From NCBI GenBank assembly GCA_002269645.1, contig NIVC01005265.1, forward strand, positions 1-12,945: a DNA stretch of 12,945 bases, given 5' to 3'. The position numbers and the translations under genes were made by a program. Below the pieces are notes generated by a model. The model had not been told where the DNA came from, made no database searches, and saw only the letters and a program-made list of their open reading frames with translations. This document shows positions 1 to 12,945 of this stretch, piece by piece (within the stretch, counting starts at the first letter, position 1; every line of letters begins with the position of its first letter). Source of the stretch: Macrostomum lignano. Lineage: Eukaryota.

Positions 1-504
1 CTGGGATAGAGAGTCACTGGGATAGAGAGTCACTATAATAGAGAGTCACTGGGATAGATTATCACTGGGATAGAGAGTCACTGGATAGAGAGTCACTGGG
101 ATAGAGAGTCACTATAATAGAGATCACTGGGATAGAGAGTCACTAGGATAGCGTCACTAGGATAGAGAGTCACTGGGATAGCGTCACTAGGATAGAGAGT
201 CACTGGGATAGCGTCACTAGGATAGAGAGTCACTGGGATAGCGTCACTAGGATTAGAGAGTCACTGGATAGCGTCACTAGATAGAGAGTCACTGGGATAG
301 CGTCACTAGGATAGAGAGTCACTGGGATAGCGTCACTAGGATAGAGAGTCACTGGGATAGAGAGTCACTGGGATAGAGTCACTAGGATAGAGAGTCACTA
401 GGATAGCGTCACTAGGATAGAGAGTCACTGGGATAGCGTCACTAGGATAGAGAGTCACTGGGATAGCGTCACTAGGATAGAGAGTCACTGGGATAGATAG
501 TCAC
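1..504. repeat. Minisatellite of 14-16 bp units (CTGGGATAGAGAGTCA / CTAGGATAGAGAGTCA / CTGGGATAGCGTCA), truncated at the window start; intronic
   Basis: Tandem units read directly. Alternating 16- and 14-bp units form a 30-bp higher-order unit (CTAGGATAGAGAGTCACTGGGATAGCGTCA) over much of 150-480. Confidence 0.95.
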
Positions 505-692
505 TCATCTGTTCATGTAATTACCGCGAGAGTTTGCCTACTTATAATAGTAGCAATTGAAGAATATGAAGCGAATGTTTTATAACACGTGCAAAATTGA
601 CCACGGCTGCTTAGCTCACACAAATATATTCTGCATTGCTTCAGAAGCAAAACTACTTATAGTAGCATCGAGTGCAACCCCAATCATTCCAG

Positions 693-837
693 CTAGCGCG
701 CTGCCAGCTCGAAGCCCGGTGCTGAAGGCCAAAGTGGAGGCCAGCACGAAGTGCTGCGGGAGCCAAGGAGGGCGGACGGCTGACTGCTGGCATCTGAAGA
801 AGCGGCGGGTGCCGAATGTCAGAGGGCGCACGAGCAG
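693..837 (+). CDS. Exon encoding the CUPID coiled coil; frameshifted as given (at least 2, probably 5, single-base losses)
   Basis: Acceptor CATTCCAG|CTA and donor GAGCAG|GTGAGG. Length 145 nt. Frame-hopping gives LARCQLEAR / VLKAKVEASTK / LREP / HLKKRR / AECQRAHEQ; adding 2 or 5 bases restores a multiple of 3. Confidence 0.65.
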
Positions 838-3800
838 GTGAGGGTGGTTCGGAGTGTGGGATTGAGGACAATGTGGAACAGAGGGTGGCAGAGAGTGAGA
901 GAAAGTGAGAGAGAGAAAGAAAAAATGGGAAAGGGTAAGAAAGAGAAAGAGGTGGGAGAGGGTAACAGAGGGTGGTGAGGGTATAAGAGAGGTGGAGAGG
1001 TAGGAGAGGCTGGGAGAGGTGAGAGAGGTAAAGAGGGTGGGAGAGGTAAGAGAGGTAGAGAGGGTGGAAGAGGGTAAGAGAGGGTGGAAGAGGGTAAGAG
1101 AGGGTGGGAGAGGTAAAGAGAGGGTGAGAGGTAACAGAGGGGGAGAGGGTAAGAGAGGGTGGAAGAGGGTAAGAGAGGGTGGGAGAGGTAAGAGAGGTGG
1201 GAGAGGGTAACAAGGGTGGGAGAGGGTGGAGAGGGTAAGAGAGGGTGAAGAGGGTAGAGAGGGTGGGAGAGGGTAAGAGAGTGTGGGAGAGGTAAGAGAG
1301 GGTGGGAGAGGGTAAGAGAGGGTGGGAGAGGTAAGAGAGGGTGGGAGACTGTAACAGAGGGTGGGAGAGGGTAAGAGAGGTGAAGGGCATAAGGTGTGAA
1401 AGCGGTGACACCAGGTGAGACGGTACTGCAGATGGCAGCGCACTCAAAGCATGATGTCATCGCATTGCCAGCCCTCCCCACCCGCCCCCTCGCTCGCAGC
1501 TGCAGCAGACAAATCGCAAAATTCAAACTCTTCGCGCCGAGGCCGCTGCGCGAAACGGCACTTCGGCCGCTGCCACCTGCCCGGATTTCCGGCTGGGCGC
1601 TTCTATGGGCTCCCTGGCCAACGCCGGGAGCCTGGAGCTCATCTCCAACGTTAGTGCCCGGCTGCTGACTTGAAGCTTTCGGCTGGGTTGGATGGCTGTT
1701 TATTGGTTGCTAGGGGGTCCGGAGGCATGCGTTGCTGATGGACAGGGTGGAGAGTAAGAGGGTCAGGTTGAGAGAAGGTGAGAATGAGACACAGGGTGAG
1801 AGTGAGACACAGGGTGAGAGTGAGACACAGGGTGAGAGTGAGACACAGGGTGAGAGTGAGACACAGGGTGAGAGTGAGACACAGGGTGAGAGTGAGACAC
1901 AGGGTGAGAGTGAGACACAGGGTGAGACACAGGGTGAGACACAGGATGAGACACAGGGTGAGACACAGGATGAGACACAGGATGAGACACAGGATAAGAC
2001 ACAAGATGAGACACAGGTTTAGACACAGGATGAGACACAGGGTGAGAAACAGGGTAAGACACAGATGGAGACAGGGTGAGACACAGGGTGAGACACAATG
2101 TGAGAAACAGGGTGAGACACAGGATGAGACACAGATGTAGACACAGATGGAGACAGGGTGAGACACAGGGTGAGACACAGATGGAGACACAGGGTGAGAC
2201 ACAGGGTTAGACACAGGGTGAGACACAGGGTGAGCCGCAGATGGAGACACAGGGTGCAGAGAGAATTATCAAATATTGAAAAACATCAGATGCAAGGCAC
2301 TCCCATCATTCTTCTTTCTTAAAAACAATCTCGATGCCCTCAGGGCTCACAGCAGCAGCTGCTGCACAGGTTTTACACGCCCAGCCCGCGCCAGCACCAT
2401 CACCAGCACCAGCAGTCCCAGCCCGACACCTACAGCCTCTCGTCCGACATCAGCCGCGACTCGTCTGAGCAGTCTTTGAGCACTGCTCTGGTATTTCCTG
2501 GGTAAGTCAGCTCGATAAAGGAGTCTGGGACTGCTCACAGAATCTGCTCCATCTTCATGGTCACTCACCCTTCATCTGCGAGTCTGGAACTGCTCAAAGC
2601 TCCAGTTGCATCTTCACGATCTCCGATCCTCCATCTGGGATTCTGGAACTGCTCAAAGCTCCAGTTGCATCTTCACGATCTCCGATCCTTCATCTGGGAG
2701 TTTTGGACTGCTCAAAGCACCAGTTTCATCTTCACGATCTCCGATCCTTCATCTGGGAGTCTGGAACTGCTCAAAGCTCCAGTTGCATCTTCACGATCTC
2801 TGATCCTTCACCTGGGTGTCTGGACTGCTCAAAATACCAGTTGCATCTTCACGATCTCCGATCCTTCATCTGGGATTCTGGAACTGCTCAAAGCTCCAGT
2901 TGCATCTTCACGATCTCCGATCCTTCATCTGGGAGTTTGGTACTGCTCAAAGCCCCAGTTGCATCTTCACGATCTCCGATCCTCCATCTGGGATTCTGGA
3001 ACTGCTCAAAGCTGCAGTTGCATCTTCACCATCTCCGATCCTTCATCTGGGAGTTTTGGACTGCTCAAAGCACCAGTTTCATCTTCACGATCTCCGATCC
3101 TTCATCTGGGAGTTTGGTACTGCTCAAAGCTCCAGTTGCATCTTCACGATCTCTGATCCTTCATCTGGGAGTTTGGTACTGCTCAAAGCTCCAGTTGCAT
3201 CTTCACGATCTCCAATCCTTCATCTGGGAGTCTGGAACTGCTCAAAGCTCCAGTTGCATCTTCACGATCTCTGATCCTTCACCTGGGTGTCTGGGACTGC
3301 TCAAAATACCAGTTGCATCTTCACGATCTCCGATCCTTCATCTGGGATTCTGGAACTGCTCAAAGCTCCAGTTGCATCTTCACGATCTCCGATCCTCCAT
3401 CTGGGATTCTGGAACTGCTCAAAGCTCAAGCTTCATCTTCTCAGTCCCTCTCATCCTTCATCTAGTAGTCGGAAACAGCTCACAGCTTCATCGTCACCGC
3501 TATCCATCGCCTCATCCAGAAGCCTGCGGCGTCACCAACCGCCGCTTCGACATCCGACGCCATCGACGAAGGAACTGTGTCGGTGGCGCTGCGCCGGGGC
3601 GGCAGCCTGGCCGCCAAGGCTGGCTCCATGGGCCGCCGGTCCAACAGCCTGGGCGACCTGCTTGGCGAGGAGGCGCTGCTGAGAGAGCAGCAACGGATTC
3701 TGTTCCGCAACCTACCTGCGCCGGTGAACACCAGCTTCCCCGCTGGCTCGGTGGCTGCCACCGCTGCTGAGCCTCCGGTTCGGGAAGATTCACAAGCTGG

Positions 3801-4949
3801 GCCCGCATCCATCGACACGTAAGGACCCCTCTGATCACTGAGATCCCCGTAAATATCCCATCTGATCACTGAGATCCCTAAAATATCCCATCTAATCATT
3901 GAGATCCCCAAAATATCCCATCTGATCATTGAGATCCCTAAAATATCCCATCTGATTATTGAGATCCCTAAAATATCCCATCTGGTCATTGAGATCCCTA
4001 AAATATCCCACCTGATCATTGAGATCCCTAAAATATCCCATCTGATCATTGAGATCCCTAAAATATCCCATCTGATTATTGAGATCCCTAAAATATCCCA
4101 TCTGGTCATTGAGATCCCTAAAATATCCCACCTGATCATTGAGATCCCTAAAATATCCCATCTGATCGTTGAAATCTCCAAAATATCCCATCTAATCATT
4201 GAGATCCCTAAAAATGCCCCATGATCATAGAAATTCCAAAGATATCCCATCAGTCTTTCTCTCCTACAAAAGAATCTGCCAGCCGCAGTGCAGTGGCGAG
4301 TCTCAATCAATCCGTATTGAATTTTTTCCATAATATTAAATATTTCTGCTCACTCAGCTCATCTAGCGCTCCTACTAGTGATTAATTTTGCATTACCCAT
4401 ATTATGATATTATTTATTCTGGCATCCAGGCCGCTAACTGCGATAAATTAATCTTACAGTCATTGTTGTCATGCTTACTTAGCTTACTTACAAAATAAAT
4501 AAGTAAATTTATTTTATCATTCTCTACTCAATTCCCTATAGTAGACGGTAGTATTAAGCGCTTATTATTTATTTCTTACCTTATTTTTCTTTGCATGTAC
4601 TATTTAATGAATTAAATCTCGTTTCTATGCATATGGTTTGCTGTTGTACTTCATCTTTGATTTTCTCATCCTTCATTAACCTAGTCCGCCTCCCAGCTTC
4701 CTGAGCAATACCTGTTCTTATGCGCCATCATTGCACTGAGAAATATATTAACTGCATGGCACTCGATTACTTACAAGCTGCACCTTAAACAGTCTTATGA
4801 GTTTTCCACCGCAACACTTTGGCCGCAGTTTTTAGGCGGCCGAAGCTGCAGTTCACAGTGTACTTTTTTGGAATTTTTTATTAACTTTTATAGCCTCATA
4901 AATGCATTTTCTCTTGCTTTTGTAGTTTATTTATTGTTTATGCATGTCC

Positions 4950-5013
<64 letters not shown>

Positions 5014-5061
5014 GCCTGCCTGTCCGTCTGTCTGTCTGTCTGTCTGTCTGCCTGCCTGTCC

Positions 5062-5101
<40 letters not shown>

Positions 5102-5177
5102 GCCTGCCTGTCCGTCTGTCTGTCTGTCTGTCTGCCTGCCTGTCCGTCTGTCTGTCTGTCTGTCTGCCTGCCTGTCC

Positions 5178-5257
<80 letters not shown>

Positions 5258-5260
5258 GCC

Positions 5261-5297
<37 letters not shown>

Positions 5298-5344
5298 GTC
5301 CGTCTGTCTGCCTGCCTGCCTGCCTGTCTTTCTGTCTGTCTGTC

Positions 5345-5379
<35 letters not shown>

Positions 5380-7063
5380 CTGCCTGCCTGCCTGCCTGTC
5401 TTTCTGTCTGTCTGTCTGTCCGTGTGTGTGCGTGCGTGTGTGTGTCTCGCTCGGCACAGTATGCATGTCTCACTCATAAAATTGCAACTGCTAAGCAGCA
5501 TGCCTAAGACCAACAACCTAAGACCATGCCTAGGCAAATGCTGTGTACAGTTAATTGCACGCGTTGTCACCAGCTCCCAATTTTTTGTCGTCACGCACCA
5601 GCAAGTTGGCCCTTATTGAAATACTACCGCGTCTTAATGGACTCGAAGGGTGCGGCGGATCAAGATTACTGTCTTATACTGATCGTATTATATGATATCA
5701 GCGCACTATAAAGCTAGCACAGTTTCAAAAGATAATTACTGTAATGTTATCAAATCAGTTTCAAAGCTGCACACATTAACTTTTAACATGGAATCTCTGG
5801 CGTGGAACTCCAGTATACTTTATCTGACAAAAATGCAAAGTAAAGGATTGCTGTTGCGGGTTTCCTAAATCCTCTGGGCGCCATTCCCGCCCTCAGACTC
5901 TTCTTTTTTGCTAAAAATAGACACGAGCCCACCGGGTACCGCTCCCCGTCCTCAGATTCTAATTGTTGCTAAAAATAGACAAATCCTCTAGGCGCCCCTT
6001 CCCGCCCAGACTCAGACTCAGACTCTGTTGCTAAAAATAGACACGAGCCCTCTGGGGCGAGGCTCCCCGTCCTCAGATTGCCGTCTTTGCTAAAAATAGA
6101 CACGAGCCCACTGGGCAGGGCTTCCCGCCCTCAGATTGCCGTATTTGCTAAAAATAGACACGAGCCCACTGGGCGCTGTTCCCCGTCCTCAGATTCTAAT
6201 TGTTGCTAAAAATAGACAAATCCTCTGGGCAACCCTTCCCGCCCTCAGACTCTGTTGCTAAAAATATACACGAGCACTCTGGGGCGAGGCTTCCCGCCCT
6301 CAGATTGCCGTTTTTGCTACAAATAGACACGAGCCCACTGGGCGGGGCTTCCCGCCCTCAGATTGCCGTATTTGCTAAAAATAGACACGAGCCCACTGGG
6401 CGGGGCTTCCCGCCCTCAGATTGCCGTATTTGCTAAAAATAGACACGAGCCCACTGGGCGCTGTTCCCCGTCCTCAGATTCTAATTGTTTCTAAAAATAG
6501 ACAAATCCTCTGGGCGCCCCTTCCCGCCCTCAGACTCTGTTGCTAAAAATATACACGAGCACTCTGGGGCGAGGCTTCCCGCCCTCAGATTGCCGTTTTT
6601 GCTACAAATAGACACGAGCCCACTGGGCGCTGTTCCCCGTCCTCAGATTCTCCTTGTTGCTAAAAATTGACACGAGCCCTCTGGGCGCCGATACCCATCA
6701 CCCACCCCCAGATTCGGCAGCAACGACGGCAGCAGCGATCACAGCGGCAGCGCCGAGTTTCTCTCGTCGCCGCAGCAGCAGCCGCCGCGTCAGCGCCGCT
6801 ACCTGAAGAAGAGCGGCTCCGCCTCTCGCGCCATTCGCCCGCCGGGCTGCTTCTTCCAGGACCCGCTGCCGCCACTCCCGCAGACGCCGCAGCCGCTGAC
6901 GGATCAACAGCAGCAGCCGGCCCTGTCCAGCGAGGAACAGCAGCGCCGCCTGTGGCGCCGTGGCATCCTCGCCTCCGACGGCGACAGTACCAGCGTCGGT
7001 GGCAACGCCGATGGCGACGACTGCTGCTTCGAGGAGGCCTCCGATAAAAGTACTTTTCTGTGA
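693..7063 (+). CDS. FRMD4: 3' part (5 exons) of a CUPID-domain, FRMD4A/B-like cytohesin-binding scaffold gene; 5' exons, presumably including the FERM domain, lie left of the window
   Basis: GT-AG exons with consistent phases 0,0,2,2. Spliced peptide ...LKKRR(R)AECQRAHEQ|LQQTNRKIQTLR aligns by eye with human FRMD4A LKKQRKTSYLNALKKLQEIENAINENR, and DSSEQSLSTALV with FRMD4A SEDSSLSDALV. Reference sequences are recalled from memory, not searched. Confidence 0.62.
840..1390. repeat. Purine-rich degenerate tandem repeat (GAGAGGGTAA / GAGAGGGTGG units); intronic
   Basis: Almost C-free + strand with 9-10 bp recurring units; source of the spurious minus-strand ORFs rich in L, P and S. Confidence 0.93.
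1500..1649 (+). CDS. Exon, 150 nt, phase 0/0: LQQTNRKIQTLRAEAAARNGTSAAATCPDFRLGASMGSLANAGSLELISN
   Basis: Acceptor CCCCCTCGCTCGCAG|CTG and donor AAC|GTTAGT. Open frame that continues the coiled-coil pattern of the previous exon. Confidence 0.75.
1785..2255. repeat. Tandem repeat: 7 perfect 18-bp units (TGAGACACAGGGTGAGAG, 1785-1910) followed by degenerate 12-bp units (TGAGACACAGGR); intronic
   Basis: Read directly from the sequence. Confidence 0.95.
2344..2501 (+). CDS. Exon, 158 nt, phase 0/2: GSQQQLLHRFYTPSPRQHHHQHQQSQPDTYSLSSDISRDSSEQSLSTALVFP(G)
   Basis: Acceptor GCCCTCAG|GGC and donor GG|GTAAGT. Open frame containing the SEQSLSTALV motif. Confidence 0.78.
2570..3485. repeat. 59-bp minisatellite (CTGGAACTGCTCAAAGCTCCAGTTGCATCTTCACGATCTCCGATCCTTCATCTGGGAGT), about 14 conserved units plus a degenerate terminal unit; intronic
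   Basis: Unit starts at 2584, 2643, 2761 ... 3409, with some 58-bp variants. No unique spacers. Confidence 0.95.
3486..3818 (+). CDS. Exon, 333 nt, phase 2/2: FIVTAIHRLIQKPAASPTAASTSDAIDEGTVSVALRRGGSLAAKAGSMGRRSNSLGDLLGEEALLREQQRILFRNLPAPVNTSFPAGSVAATAAEPPVREDSQAGPASID(T)
   Basis: Acceptor CTCACAG|C completes the GG|C codon; donor AC|GTAAGG. Includes the track ORF 3577-3822. Confidence 0.75.
3831..4250. repeat. 30-bp minisatellite (TCTGATCATTGAGATCCCTAAAATATCCCA), about 13 units, with an exact 120-bp higher-order duplication; intronic
   Basis: 3921-4040 is identical to 4041-4160 (variant order tctgatcatt, tctgattatt, tctggtcatt, cctgatcatt). Confidence 0.95.
4945..5446. repeat. Long (TCTG)n / GACA microsatellite with TGCC and TCCG interruptions, ending in a (TG)n/(TGCG)n tail; intronic
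   Basis: Read directly; source of the LSVC and TDRQ ORFs. Confidence 0.98.
5866..6690. repeat. Higher-order minisatellite of 52-62 bp units (core TGCTAAAAATAGACACGAGCCCACTGGGCG...CCCGCCCTCAGA), about 14 units of four variant types; intronic
   Basis: Variant order a,d,a,b,c,d,a,b,c,c,d,a,b,d plus a partial unit. Most units carry a GGGCG...CGYCC inverted repeat. Confidence 0.93.
6712..7063 (+). CDS. Terminal coding exon: FGSNDGSSDHSGSAEFLSSPQQQPPRQRRYLKKSGSASRAIRPPGCFFQDPLPPLPQTPQPLTDQQQQPALSSEEQQRRLWRRGILASDGDSTSVGGNADGDDCCFEEASDKSTFL*
   Basis: Acceptor CACCCACCCCCAG|A completes AC|A (phase 2). Open to TGA at 7061-7063 in a GC-rich island. This frame is absent from the ORF track. An unrecognised exon between 3819 and 6711 cannot be excluded. 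Confidence 0.72.
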
Positions 7064-7084
7064 TACCTGGCATGTCCTGTCCTA

Positions 7085-7820
7085 TTCTAACTCTCCGACT
7101 CGTCTAATCTCCCTTATATAATCTCTCCCCTGTCTCATCTAATCTCTCATGTCTCATCTAATCTCTCATGTCTCATCTAATCTCTCATGTCTCATCTAAT
7201 CTCTCCACTGTCGCATCTAGTCTATCCACTGTTTCATCTAATCTCTTCACTGTCTCATCTAATCTCTCATGTCTCATCTAATCTCTCCAATGTCGCATCT
7301 AGTCTATCCACTGTTTCATCTAATCTCTTCACTGTCTCATCTAATCTCTCCACTGTCTCATCTAGTCTATCCACTGTTTCATCTAATCTCTTCACTGTCT
7401 CATATAATCTCTCGCCTGTCTCATCTAATCTCTCTCATGTCTCATATAATCTCTCGCCTGTCTCATATAATCTCTCGTCTGTCTCATATAATCTCTCGTC
7501 TGTCTCATATAATCTCTCGTCTGTCTCATCTACATGTAATCTCTCTCATGTCTCATCTAACTTCCCCCTATCTCATCTAATCGATCTCCACTGTCTCATC
7601 TAACCTCTTGCCTGTCTCATCTAATTTCTCTTCCCTGTCTCAACTAATCTCTCTTCCCTGTCTCATCTAATCTCTCTTCTCTCCCTGTCTCATCTAATCT
7701 CTCTCTCTGTCTCATCTACTCTCTCCCCTGTCTCTTATAATCTCTCTGTCGTGTCTCATCTCTCTCCTGTTCAATGTAATCTCTATCCTATGTTTCATCT
7801 CATCCCTCCTGTCACATCTA
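7085..7820. repeat. Pyrimidine-rich degenerate tandem repeat of 19-21 bp units (TGTCTCATCTAATCTCTCA) with an 82-bp internal duplication; 3' UTR or 3' flank
   Basis: Read directly. The TCGCATCTAGTCTATCC block recurs at 7211 and 7293. Confidence 0.92.
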
Positions 7821-9391: not shown

Positions 9392-12300
9392 TTATCTGGG
9401 CAGACCCGGCAGCATCTGCAGCACCAGAAATCCCTGACTGTCGGCCAGGCTTCCCAGCGAAGCCGTCGCAGTTGCTGCTGCTCCAACTGGCCGCAGCTGA
9501 AATCCACCACCTCCACCGCCGCTGCTGACGCCGCTCGCCAACTCGGCCGAAAGTCGGTCGCGGAACTCGCCCAGCCCGATGCCGGCCGGGCAGCCGCTGT
9601 ACAGCCGGGCCGCTCCGTTCGGATCGCGGACGAATACGGACACAATGGCGCCGCCGTCGGTGCCGCTGCTGTCGGTGGAGTCCGACGCCTGCAGGCAATG
9701 CAGCCGGCGAAGGTTGCCGCCGTCGCCGCCGGGTCCAAGTTCGACACTATCCAGCTGAGTGTCTGGTTCGAGGACGACAACTGGCGTCGAGGCCGCGCGG
9801 TTGATGCCGACGGCGGCGGAGCCAAGCAAGCCGAAGCGGTGGCTCCTCGCTGCTGTCGACGAGATCCGCGGCCAGTTGGTGCGCCGCCGCAGCAGCCTCA
9901 CTCGTTGTCAGGCCTGGACGCAGGGGCACGACAAACTCGTAGTTGGGTCTGACGGCGATCTGCACCACCGGCTGGTCCGGCCCGACCGCCTCCAGGCTGC
10001 TGGTTGATGTCACCGAGTAGTCGGCGAGCCGGCGACTGTCGCACAACACGCGGCCGCGCAGCGTCAGGGTTTGGTCGTAGGGCCGTGGGCCACCGAGACG
10101 GTGAACGAGAGACTTCAGCGTGCCGATCTGCAGGTCTGGTTCGGCGAACAGCGCCAAATTTTGTCGCCGACGCGAACTCGCAGATCAAAGTGGCTTGGTC
10201 CGGTCGCTTGTAGGACGTCGTCTTTGCCCAGGCCGAGTCGGACGAGTTCCCGAGCGTCATCAAGCAGTCGGTCACCCATGGCAATGCGCAGCTGGTCAAA
10301 GTCGCAGTCTTGCTGGCTCTGTCGGTACCGTGGAGCTTCATTCGGAGCGTCCGCACCGTCGCGTTACGCGGCATCGTGACCGGCAGGAAGCTGTTGCGGT
10401 GTAGCACGGTGCACTTCACCAGCTGGTCGGCGCACAGTCGGAGCACACAGGCGTCACTCAGCTCGTAGTGCCGCAAAGTTCGTCCCCTATTGAGCTGCCT
10501 GTTGCCGAATTTCAAACGCAGGCACTGCGAATCCAGCCCTGTGGCTCGGCTCACCTTTGACAGCAGGTCTTCCACGTGAGTGTCCGCGTCGAGCGTTGCC
10601 GACAGCGGCTTGGCGCGCAGGCGCCCGACATCGATGGTGACGCGGATTCGCTGGCGCTGACTCCCTGATGGTGGCTGCTCATCTTTCAATTGCTTAGCAG
10701 CTGCTGAAGCTGACGAACTCTCAGCTTTGGTCATGCTGGACTTCGTTTCTGGGGATCGCTTCGTCTGCGTCGCCTTATGACCGTTTGGCTCGCTGAACTC
10801 CTGCCGAATCTTTGTTGCTTGAGCCGCCGATTCCAGCATGGCTTTGGCTCTCTCGGTGGAGCTGATCAACTCAGATTTGGCCTGTCTAGCCAGCTGTTCC
10901 AGATCCCAAATAGTTCCTTGTGGAACTGTCATCGTACTTGATTTGACTGGCTCCTGGTCGGCTTGGGCTCGGCCGGACACTCGATTAGTCCAGTCTCTCA
11001 GCTCGCTGTCTGTGATGATCCGCTGCTTCAACGACGGCGGCACCGGCTGCTGTTGCGGGGTGGTTGAGTAACTGGGCAGCACAGGCGGCCTGTCTACCGT
11101 GATTCGCTCAGCTCTGCAGGAAGACAGAGAGCGCACACTGGACGGCGTACTTGATGCCGAGTTGAAGTCTTCCGGCCGATTGGAGAGCAGACCAGCCTGC
11201 CGCAGGAGCGACTCTGTGTTTTGACCGGCGTCTGGCGGCAGGATTCGACTGAAACTCGACGGTCCAGGTCGTCGGAGCTCACCTGTCAGAAACTGTATCG
11301 GCACGCGGCGGTTGACTGGCGCCACTGGCTGCGTTCGAGGCGGCGTCAGCGGCTCAATGATTGAACTCCGATCATCCGACGCTGTAGATGCCGGCGCCAA
11401 AGGAGAAATCGGGGGTCTGGCGCGGGGTCCTCTGCTGGCCAGCTTTCGTCGAACTCCGGCTGCTAGAAGCTTTTCAACTCGCTCCACAGCAGCTTCGCTG
11501 GGGGTTGGCGAGTCGGTGGCCCGGATAAGACTTCGGCTGCGTCTGGAGAGGGGCGCGCTGCCTACACGACCCCGACTGTGTCCGCTGGCCGCAAAGTCAC
11601 GGTCGAGCAGCTCGTTGTGCTCGAAATTGACAGCGAGTTCCTGCTCCGAGTACTGATCCGACGGAGTTGGCAGGTCCGATTCGGCGTCAGCCATCAACCA
11701 GTGCGAGCTATTTGCCAGCTCGGGAGACTTGGTTGCAGCCCTGCGAAGCCGCCTCAAGTTGGCCAGCTCCGCCATCAGTTCGCTCTCACCGTCGTTCATG
11801 AGCTCCTCAATAGCGTCGAGCTCCGCCTCAATCTCGGAAGTTGTCAATCCCTGGCGTTTCTGTACGTCACCTCTGCTGAGTTCCAACAGGGCCAGAAGTT
11901 CTTCCCGGTCCCACCGTGATAAAGGATGCTCTGATGGTTGCTGGGGAAGCTCAGTCGAGTCCTCAGATGCCTCATAGTACCTCAGATGAAGTGGGAATCC
12001 CAGCTGTTCGGCACCATCATCCAGGTGGGGCTCTGATGCAGCATGAAGGTTGGCAGGTCTCTGGAACTTCATAGGATCGGAGGAGCGAAATTCATGTCCT
12101 TCGTCTGGGCGATCTTTTCCATGACTTTCATCTAGAAGCGGAGGCTGCTTTTTGCTGGAATCTTCCTCCGGCGCTTTTTCTGGCTTTGTCTGTGTGCAGC
12201 GGTCGGAGCTGCTGGGCCTGGGCTCGGTCTGGAACGACCTGGATTCCAGAGTTCGCTGCCTGCTGCGTCGGCCGCTGTCTGGAGGCTCATCAACGCAAAC

Positions 12301-12945
12301 GTGAGAATCGACAACTGTCTTCGAGGCTCCGTCCGGCTTTCCGTTAGATAAATCCGACGATCCCGATGGCTCGTCCCAGCCTCCAGGGAGCAGATCGTCG
12401 GGATCCACCACTTTTTTCCAGGTCTTCTTCGTGTCATCGCTGGGTTTCTCTTCTACTAGCGATGCCAGGCTGTCCCGGCTTGCTGGGGGTCGCGCTTGAT
12501 CAGGGATGTTAAAAGCGGCTCGCTCTCCTCCTCTGCGCCCTGAGTTGATGTTGAAATATCAGCCATCTGCGGAGCGGGCACTGGTACGCTCGGCTGCTCC
12601 TTGGATTCGTCGTCACTTTTGCGCTCCGTTTCGGTGCCCACTTCGCTCACTAAAGGTTGAGTTCGAACGGAGCCGTGCCGGCTGAAGTCCGCCAGCAAGT
12701 CGAAGTGGTGGCGAATGCGTCCTGCTTGGATGGTAGCGGAAGCGTCTTCGCAGCTTCATCGTCCGACGCTTTCGATTTTGGCACGGTGGACGGGGTCTGT
12801 TCGGACAGTCGTCTGGCCCTGGCCGGATGCGAATGCCTCGGACCCAGCATGCCACAGACATCACAGAAAAATTCTTCGGCTTCTGGATGCTTTGATCATC
12901 CGAGCGAGCCCGAATGCCAGAGCTGATGTAGCTCTTTGGCTCTGG
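9392..12945 (-). CDS. Large, apparently intronless CDS: long acidic, Ser/Pro-rich disordered region plus 3-5 tandem C-terminal ubiquitin-like domains; about 6 frameshifts; 5' end beyond the window
   Basis: Track ORFs 12650-12850, 12456-12698, 9898-12411, 9747-10157 and 9392-9901, plus an untracked frame at about 10330-10157, chain into one protein by frame changes. Stop TAA at 9392-9394. Continuous GC-rich codon-like composition. Confidence 0.8.
9395..9646 (-). other. Possible fifth, highly divergent beta-grasp (UBL/PB1-like) domain at the C-terminus
   Basis: IVSVFVRDPNGAARLY...GLGEFRDRL...FQLR...SLGSL...LVLQM resembles ubiquitin [19 protein letters not shown] and TLHLV; weak. Confidence 0.4.
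9690..9968 (-). other. Divergent ubiquitin-like domain 4 (spans a frameshift at about 9785-9830)
   Basis: VVQIAVRPNYEFVVPLRPGLTTSEAAAAAHQL...LRLAWL / VVVLEPDTQLDSVEL...LHCL: beta-beta-alpha-beta-beta-beta pattern with a degenerate L.pD..L...l motif. Confidence 0.5.
9980..10190 (-). other. Ubiquitin-like domain 3 (spans a frameshift at about 10157)
   Basis: FDLRVRVGDKI / LALFAEPDLQIGTLKSLVHRLGGPRPYDQTLTLRGRVLCDSRRLADYSVTSTSSLEAV; QTLTLRGRVLCDSRRLADYSV corresponds to ubiquitin [21 protein letters not shown]. Confidence 0.82.
10200..10425 (-). other. Ubiquitin-like domain 2 (spans a frameshift at about 10330)
   Basis: VKCTVLHRNSFLPVTMPRNATVRTLRMKLH / ...QQDCDFDQLRIAMGDRLLDDARELVRLGLGKDDVLQA matches the UBL pattern (TV..LK.K, QLRI..GD..L.D...L). 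Confidence 0.72.
10435..10650 (-). other. Ubiquitin-like domain 1
   Basis: RIRVTIDV...TLDADTHVEDLLSKVSRATGLDSQCLRLKFGNRQLNRGRTLRHYELSDACVLRL parallels ubiquitin [48 protein letters not shown]. Confidence 0.85.

Follow-up and report, generated by a model that had tools for sequence, protein, structure and literature searches.

The locus, its copies and the frame changes

We analysed a stretch of 12,945 nucleotides (nt) of Macrostomum lignano DNA (the window), which is the full contig NIVC01005265.1 of the Mlig_3_7 assembly (GCA_002269645.1). The minus strand of this contig carries a gene for a protein having tandem ubiquitin-like (UBL) domains at the end of a long low-complexity region. A first-pass annotation of this DNA had taken the product for an unrecognised protein; however, it already has entries in GenBank and UniProt, where it stands as an uncharacterised protein with a ubiquitin-like domain. 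We searched a collection of 5.8 billion proteins by a word-indexed method, using the minus-strand open reading frame (ORF) of 837 amino acids (aa) at 9898..12411, and observed a match with one cluster only. The two other members of this cluster are both from M. lignano. P0002 (PAA50252.1; UniRef A0A267DNX3) is the 1154-aa product of Mlig032073.g4 and was deposited under the name "Ubiquitin-like domain-containing protein", and P0003 (PAA89843.1) is the 514-aa product of Mlig032073.g1. No mention of the gene identifier Mlig032073, and no expression or phenotype data under it, were found in the searchable full texts or in the supplements of M. lignano papers.

Two paralogous copies of the gene are present in the same assembly, on the contigs NIVC01003685.1 (L002) and NIVC01000136.1 (L003). 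The coding sequence (CDS) of P0002 is one uninterrupted exon (L002:6001-9465), and the L002 copy sits at the end of its contig. The L002 and L003 contigs are 99.93% identical over 10.2 kb, with 1 mismatch and 6 gap columns, and may represent a single locus that was assembled twice, or else a duplication of very recent date. The gene in the window is a near-identical duplicate of Mlig032073.g4 and is intronless across the part seen. We rejected a transposon, viral or prokaryotic origin, as this is an M. lignano contig where the only domains are UBLs and the flanks are minisatellites.

Next, we compared the reading frames of the three copies. In the DNA alignment with L002 and L003, the CDS equivalent to P0002 has six 1-nt deletions in the window (Table 1), which are all private to this copy and five of which are in homopolymers. 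From position 12945 to 9797 we counted 8 indels and 0 substitutions in 3,149 nt relative to L002. Six of these 8 are the CDS deletions, and the stretch 12851..12945 has an extra G at 12911 (GGG, which L003 also reads) and lacks a G at 12877. Real divergence was observed only 3' of 9797, where 9 substitutions fall within the CDS; it amounts to 2.6% over the final 340 nt of coding sequence and to ∼3.9% downstream. Across the gene, L002 and L003 differ only by two 1-nt homopolymer indels, one private to each, and the length differences between the three copies are of single bases only. We rejected introns as an origin of the frame changes, because the intact copies are collinear and their sole gaps are single bases.

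Mlig_3_7 was assembled from PacBio reads by Canu and polished by Pilon, and 180 Mb of it lie in duplicated blocks that are ≥95% identical (PMC5730564). As the indels are private, mostly in homopolymers and not accompanied by substitutions, which is the signature of an unpolished long-read consensus in duplicates, the frame changes are very probably consensus errors of this kind. The deposited 724-aa model of the window contig is a by-product of the deletion errors, and the three GenBank models at the locus (724, 1154 and 514 aa) are probably all truncations originating from homopolymer errors in duplicated Mlig_3_7 regions. After repair, ∼419 codons are contiguous from 10647 to 9395 on the minus strand. 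This agrees with the ∼420 codons of the first-pass annotation, and the reading was confirmed by the copies P0002 and P0003. Its count of three frame changes has to be revised. We found four 1-nt deletions within 9392-10650 (∼10304, 10158, 9819 and 9797) and two more on the 5' side (∼12701 and 12514); only three were counted because the deletions at 9819 and 9797, 22 nt apart, look like one shift.

We also noticed that the identity of the window to L002 and L003 is mosaic around the boundary at 9797, with no substitutions against L002 before it, then 2.6% and then ∼3.9%. This pattern may have arisen by gene conversion between duplicated loci or from a chimeric consensus of reads of two copies.

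Ubiquitin-like units and the low-complexity arm

The whole P0002 protein scored 53.3 bits against PF00240 (clan CL0072; gathering cut-off, 25.4 bits), in 3 stretches. We compared its individual units with this family, and also with a home-made profile of 300 diverse UBL units using hhalign. Structures were predicted by AlphaFold2 (AF2) with a 34-row alignment that included 33 trimmed poly-UBL matches, and the confidence scores (predicted local distance difference test, pLDDT) are given as means of 10-residue blocks (Table 1). From phmmer searches of the PDB, we observed that residues 8-226 of the C-terminal 423 aa are collinear with three successive units of linear polyubiquitin, with E-values of 2e-11 for tri-ubiquitin (5h07) and 3e-21 for tetra-ubiquitin. 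Unit 2 (U2), the most diverged of the units U1-U3, is collinear with the middle unit of tri-ubiquitin. In the AF2 models made with the alignment, all three units have the canonical beta-grasp order (beta-beta-alpha-beta-beta-3/10-beta), and the top Foldseek matches were linear tetra- and tri-ubiquitin (E of the order of 1e-16, best 4e-17; probability 1.0). The mean pLDDT without the alignment was only 36.5.

U1-U3 share 16-29% identity with ubiquitin and 14-32% with one another, and hence the units are mutually divergent, as had been noticed before. The junctions read LCAD/QL between U1 and U2, ATGPSH/FD between U2 and U3 and AVGPDQP/VV after U3. No unit ends in LRGG or GG. The U1-U2 junction, VLRLCAD/QLVKCTV, overlays VLRLRGG/MQIFVKT of ubiquitin, and this likeness in sequence points to descent from a polyubiquitin-type array. 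The protein was also seen to end in LQMLPGLPR, as described earlier, directly before the stop codon (9394-9392), and QMLPGLPR precedes the stop in all three copies. In the AF2 model, connectors of 2-4 residues run from the final strand of a unit to the opening strand of its successor, and these are shorter than the flexible RLRGG tail in a Met1-linked chain.

Most ubiquitin receptors bind a patch of ubiquitin that has Ile44 at its centre. UIM, UBA, UBAN, Rpn10/13 and OTULIN contact this patch and the tail of ubiquitin. The position of Ile44 is occupied by K, A and T in U1, U2 and U3, respectively, and position 68 by R, Q and E, while the Lys48 position is Arg in all of them. These changes at 44 and 68, together with the loss of the tail, would remove the main receptor contact surface, and therefore mimicry of chains towards canonical receptors is disfavoured.

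On the sequence matches and predicted structures described above, U1-U3 are three real, highly diverged ubiquitin-family beta-grasp domains in head-to-tail order. Having no Gly-Gly at the junctions or at the C-terminus, the array should be neither cleavable nor conjugatable. In fold and topology U1-U3 resemble Met1-linked tri-ubiquitin, and the earlier description of a non-conjugatable tandem array on a long low-complexity region is supported by the absence of Gly-Gly anywhere.

The first-pass annotation had proposed 3-5 UBL units. Three of them are supported by Pfam, the tri-ubiquitin alignment and AF2, but candidate units 4 and 5 (U4 and U5) gained no support from Pfam, the PDB, hhalign or pairwise comparison. 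Neither matched PF00240, hhalign probabilities against the 300-unit profile were 0.4% for U4 and 2.5% for U5, and U4-U5 alone did not match anything in the PDB. In shuffled Smith-Waterman comparisons with the other units no likeness above chance was detected (z ≤2.4 vs 4-12 for the controls). What speaks for U4 and U5 as UBLs is weak. U4 begins exactly one ubiquitin-length after U3, and some poly-UBL matches and Foldseek alignments of tetra-ubiquitin run in register into its first 25-45 residues. A similar beta-beta-alpha-beta pattern of U4-U5 appeared in both the AF2 runs (with the alignment, at low pLDDT, and from the single sequence, mean 36.5). U4 and U5 may be degenerate UBLs, as far as these predictions go.

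The low-complexity arm has no Pfam domain and no match in the PDB, and no homologue of it was found in the word-indexed searches. It had been described as a disordered arm of >750 aa. The arm is 735 aa up to the annotated Met, but the frame remains open to the end of the contig, 95 nt 5' of the annotated ATG, and it probably continues much further. Directly upstream on L002 there is an unannotated ORF of 1,433 aa (1901..6202, plus strand) that overlaps the annotated ATG in another frame. L002:5939 reads GG, whereas L003 and the window read GGG, and with GGG at this site the upstream ORF joins the UBL ORF in frame. On L003 (1-5467, plus strand) the frame is physically open over this junction for 1,822 codons, up to a CCCCC to CCCC deletion of L003's own. 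When we took the majority base of the three copies at each indel site, we obtained a single ORF of 2,521 codons with 0 stops; in the two remaining sense frames, every 300 codons contain 2-24 stops.

The reconstructed N-terminus contains two extra head-to-tail UBLs (N1 and N2), which scored 31.1 and 29.2 bits against PF00240. Their junction, LRVTEW/LEIFIRH, has the spacing of polyubiquitin and no GG, and both have Arg at the Ile44 position. Between this pair and the annotated Met are ∼1,200 aa with 20% Gly and with acidic, RS-rich, Lys-rich (KRDKKRKKKKD) and poly-Ser tracts, and the two arrays are separated by ∼1,900 aa of low complexity, containing Gly/acidic, RS and Lys-rich tracts that resemble nuclear localization signals. 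By word-indexed search with its N-terminal 258 aa, the upstream ORF is absent from the protein collections, and Pfam detected no UCH/USP domain in either P0002 or the upstream ORF. We consider it likely from the alignment of the copies that this is one gene with a product of ∼2,521 aa, where the window contig ends inside the ORF and the N-terminal half is wholly unannotated.

In the part reconstructed from L002, outside the window, we also noticed Gly/Ala-rich hydrophobic stretches flanked by Lys-rich tracts, such as AAGIGGGIIGASGVGVIV (reconstructed residues 583-607, 785-803 and 900-918). Their Kyte-Doolittle peaks are just 1.2-1.7, and they may be membrane-interacting segments or mere low complexity.

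Table 1. Coordinates of the features in the window (residue numbers refer to P0002)
Feature	Position	Strand	Evidence and remarks
CDS equivalent to P0002 (Mlig032073.g4, 1154 aa)	9392..12850	-	Aligned to L002 and L003; six 1-nt deletions here
Deposited CDS of the window contig (P0001, 724 aa)	9898..12072	-	Truncated at both ends; out-of-frame C-terminal tail from the deletion at ∼10304
Stretch 5' of the annotated ATG to the contig end	12851..12945	-	Frame stays open in the paralogous copies and joins a long upstream ORF
Low-complexity S/P/E/A/R-rich region (1-735)	10648..12850	-	Composition; two short helix-like stretches
UBL unit 1 (736-809)	10426..10647	-	Ends VLRLCAD; PF00240 26.1 bits; hhalign 96.7%; AF2 pLDDT 86-97, beta-grasp
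UBL unit 2 (810-886)	10196..10425	-	PF00240 14.9 bits, under the cut-off; hhalign 43%, E 2.4e-4; AF2 pLDDT 84-92, one loop block 69
UBL unit 3 (887-961)	9972..10195	-	PF00240 30.4 bits; hhalign 97.1%; AF2 pLDDT 81-96
Candidate unit 4 (962-1056)	9689..9971	-	Beta-beta-alpha-beta predicted, then ∼55-aa disordered insertion; AF2 pLDDT 43-66, then <35
Ser/Asp/Gly-rich linker ASDSTDSSGTDGG	9650..9688	-	Sequence; AF2 pLDDT <35
Candidate unit 5 (1070-1154)	9395..9649	-	Ends LVLQMLPGLPR; beta-beta-alpha, Gly-rich loop, beta strand predicted; pLDDT 53-62 in first half, <50 in the rest
Stop codon TAA	9392..9394	-	Sequence
1-nt deletion GG -> G	12701..12702	-	Alignment vs L002, L003
1-nt deletion TTTTT -> TTTT	12514..12515	-	Alignment vs L002, L003
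1-nt deletion CC -> C	10304..10305	-	Alignment vs L002, L003; inside U2
1-nt deletion TTTT -> TTT	10158..10159	-	Alignment vs L002, L003; inside U3
1-nt deletion CCC -> CC	9819..9820	-	Alignment vs L002, L003; inside candidate unit 4
1-nt deletion + substitution AT -> C	9797..9798	-	Inside candidate unit 4; true divergence starts here
Minisatellite, 16/30-bp units	1-505		
Minisatellite, 10/20/39-bp units	951-1380		
Minisatellite, 12/18-bp units	1777-2256		
Minisatellite, 59-bp x15.6	2520-3440		
Minisatellite, 30-bp x14	3826-4251		
Repeat (TGTC)119	4945-5420		
Minisatellite, 58/227/285-bp units	5884-6687		
Minisatellite, 21-bp x29	7119-7746		

The rest of the contig, from 1 to 7800, consists mostly of minisatellite arrays, which make many long spurious ORFs on both strands. 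The end of a plus-strand ORF at 3577-3822 corresponds approximately to the position of the 3' end of an annotated 995-aa gene of L003 (L003:13171; faint Pfam FERM_M/FERM_C), and this ORF is probably the last coding exon of a convergent copy of the FERM-domain gene. The region 6501-7000 has a local GC peak of 0.65 with Arg/Ala-rich ORFs at 6660..7073 (minus strand) and 6667..7047 (plus strand). As no gene is annotated at the L003 counterpart of this region, these ORFs are probably non-coding.

Relatives, proposed function and rival readings

An exhaustive phmmer search with the C-terminal 423 aa among 1.84 billion representative proteins gave 518 matches at E ≤0.001, which were all ubiquitin or poly-UBL proteins. 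We realigned the best 149 of the 518 locally and observed that all fall within query residues 2-275, with identities of 20-34%, so that U4-U5 are covered by none of these 149. No orthologue was found among the 1.84 billion proteins. Word-indexed searches using the 837-aa ORF and the 423-aa UBL region returned their own cluster or nothing. The gene thus looks restricted to Macrostomum as far as the searched collections reach, and flatworm transcriptomes are probably under-represented in these. That the protein may be lineage-specific had been suggested earlier, and this appears to be so, as U4-U5 remained uncovered in the exhaustive search and the arm had no match in the word-indexed ones.

The earlier interpretation had started from the premise that only polyubiquitin with identical units and two-UBL proteins are known. 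This premise fails, as the databases contain many divergent non-GG proteins with 15-20 units. PF00240 matched 16-20 stretches in each of P0032, P0065, P0087 and P0131, and in P0009, P0012 and P0017 most of the junctions are non-GG. Such poly-UBL proteins form a large and apparently unstudied class. We further noticed that P0032, P0065, P0087, P0089 and P0131 are uncharacterised eukaryotic proteins of 1,400-1,900 aa having 15-20 divergent ubiquitin-family domains, and that P0089 also bears a C-terminal protein kinase domain.

The best explanation of the locus, which we hold with moderate confidence, is a mis-assembled duplicate of Mlig032073 that encodes a non-processed, polyubiquitin-derived scaffold. 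The protein would be the relic of a polyubiquitin-type gene after the loss of cleavability, and its product would be made and kept as one uncleaved chain, which deubiquitinases could not cut to monomers and E1 could not activate. The terminal beta-grasp arrays might then serve as folded modules for binding proteins, on a tether that is long, flexible and probably nuclear. Their partners would more likely be lineage-specific than canonical ubiquitin receptors, because U1-U3 have K/A/T, and the N-terminal pair R/R, at the positions of the Ile44 patch.

Several points weigh against this explanation. The proposed function is read solely from the architecture and the surface residues. The only diverged stretch (9460-9797) holds 5 non-synonymous and 3 synonymous differences, which are too few for showing purifying selection, and U4 and U5 have gained no statistical support as UBLs. 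The complete frame of 2,521 codons is not found without interruption in any of the three copies. In GenBank, only the downstream 1154 aa are annotated; the upstream part may be a separate gene, or the Gly-rich middle may be partly non-coding. The artefact status of the deletions and the expression of the window copy are not directly proven.

Concerning the structure of the gene, we weighed two other readings. The window copy could be a true pseudogene, one of several redundant copies decaying by frameshift in a neopolyploid genome that, being highly duplicated, would tolerate the loss of one copy. Six deletions that break the frame of a single CDS, in an assembly polished with Illumina reads (PMC5730564), together with the true 2.6-3.9% divergence of its 3' end, fit with such decay, but indels with no substitutions over 3,149 nt are the reverse of the natural mutation spectrum. 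Moreover, five of the six deletions shorten homopolymers, L002 and L003 each have a private homopolymer indel alike, and Pilon cannot correct sites at which short reads can be placed on several near-identical copies. A pseudogene is therefore improbable, and the earlier concern that the frameshifts are real is largely dispelled by their private homopolymer character and the lack of accompanying substitutions. It is somewhat less doubtful, but still unlikely, that the 1,433-aa and the 1,154-aa ORFs are two genes, for example neighbouring cistrons of a trans-spliced unit, with the 1,154-aa form as the protein of the window. The GenBank models begin at the downstream ATG, the upstream ORF is not in the protein collections, and ∼7% of M. 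lignano transcripts were reported to be polycistronic precursors resolved by trans-splicing (PMC5730564). However, the majority call of GGG (L003 and the window) leaves no stop and gives an in-frame run into the UBL ORF, which on L003 is open for 1,822 codons, and both the halves share unusual UBLs of polyubiquitin spacing without GG. The absence of an upstream model could also have come from the annotation pipeline, which dropped repeat-overlapping transcripts (PMC5730564) and would remove the Gly-rich part.

Concerning the function, the ORF could be young or decaying and have no selected role, being a polyubiquitin relic joined to expanded low-complexity DNA that is transcribed but neutral. 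No orthologues were found, the composition bias is extreme (Gly makes up 20% of the residues from the N-terminal UBL pair to the annotated Met), and the units have diverged strongly, U4-U5 almost past recognition. The count of 5 non-synonymous against 3 synonymous differences would also fit neutral evolution. Neutrality is nevertheless rather unlikely. A stop-free frame of 7.5 kb has been kept while each other sense frame has many stops, and the pattern of hydrophobic core residues survives in U1-U3, N1 and N2 to the extent that they give confident beta-grasp models or pass the Pfam threshold. The gene models at three loci were also guided by RNA-seq, as were those of M. lignano in general (PMC5730564). 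The first-pass annotation had proposed that the tandem UBLs may imitate a Met1-linked chain, as a decoy or an adaptor that engages readers of linear chains, deubiquitinases, receptors of the proteasome or cofactors of p97. U1-U3 are collinear with linear tri-/tetra-ubiquitin in sequence and predicted structure, with junctions of about the same length, and an array without Gly-Gly would resist cleavage as a decoy should. The surface chemistry of the units weakens this proposal: with K/A/T at the Ile44 position, R/Q/E at position 68, and linkers shorter than the lost RLRGG tail, the contact residues of known ubiquitin complexes are not conserved. Identity to ubiquitin is just 16-29%, and Pfam detected no UBA, UIM, UBX or other ubiquitin-system domain in P0002. 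The chain-reader decoy idea appears topologically apt but chemically unsupported, and we consider it very unlikely on the residues seen. A more far-reaching reading would be a polyubiquitin gene that became a giant uncleavable pseudo-chain with UBL arrays at both ends of a ∼1,900-aa disordered tether, serving as a deubiquitinase-resistant, genetically encoded stand-in for ubiquitin chains in a pathway specific to flatworms, e.g. by seeding or scaffolding condensates in the nucleus or by titrating factors that bind chains; we regard this as highly improbable.

If the non-processed scaffold is what the locus encodes, it clearly exemplifies how a polyubiquitin-type array, after losing its cleavage sites and receptor surfaces, was retained in a large disordered protein. 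If functional, it would represent one route for recycling ubiquitin repeats as plain structural modules. Transgenesis and RNA interference are feasible in M. lignano.

Comparison with known systems

The best match in both sequence and structure is with polyubiquitin (UBB/UBC) and Met1-linked chains, where units follow head to tail without a spacer at a period of ∼75 residues, as U1-U3 do. However, the units of polyubiquitin are near-identical, whereas those of the flatworm protein have diverged to the low identities given above. Its junctions lack the RGG-Met cleavage site and its C-terminus is LPGLPR, which precludes processing and conjugation; the Ile44 patch has other residues, and the array is part of a >1,100-aa protein.

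Uncharacterised divergent poly-UBL proteins such as P0009, P0012, P0017, P0032, P0065, P0087 and P0131, which come from eukaryotic genome and metagenome assemblies, are the nearest relatives by exhaustive phmmer (20-28% identity). They share tandem divergent PF00240 units with mostly non-GG junctions. In contrast to the small end arrays and the very long low-complexity middle of the flatworm protein, theirs are almost wall-to-wall arrays of 7-20 units, and none of them aligns past residue 275 of the 423-aa C-terminal query (best 149 of 518 matches).

ISG15, FAT10 and OASL also have tandem diverged UBLs in one chain, and all the three were among the Foldseek matches. ISG15 and FAT10 are modifiers of small size whose C-terminal (LR)GG is exposed; the flatworm protein differs by its LPGLPR end, at least three units and the lack of an OAS domain. 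From the UBL-UBA shuttles (Rad23, Dsk2/ubiquilin and Ddi1) it is separated by having no UBA, UIM, STI1 or RVP domain at E ≤10 in Pfam, and by K/A/T at the Ile44 equivalent. BAG6/Scythe, compared from general knowledge and Pfam only, resembles it in that one or more UBLs sit on a low-complexity region of great length. BAG6, whose disordered regions are long and proline-rich, is in part a nuclear protein; in the flatworm protein no BAG domain was detected by Pfam, and there is no similarity outside the UBL fold.

The functional analogy that we favour is with the HUBL arrays of USP7/USP47, where several non-conjugatable UBLs stand in a row. In these HUBLs the receptor surfaces of ubiquitin are lost, and the domains bind partners or act within their own molecule. 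The flatworm protein differs from USP7/USP47 by having no USP catalytic and no TRAF/MATH domain in Pfam, and no specific similarity to HUBL sequences was found. It is a lineage-specific member of the known UBL-domain or degenerate polyubiquitin proteins, already deposited but mis-modelled, and does not represent a new biochemical system. By analogy, we infer that its function would be closer to that of the USP7 HUBL arrays than to that of ubiquitin chains.

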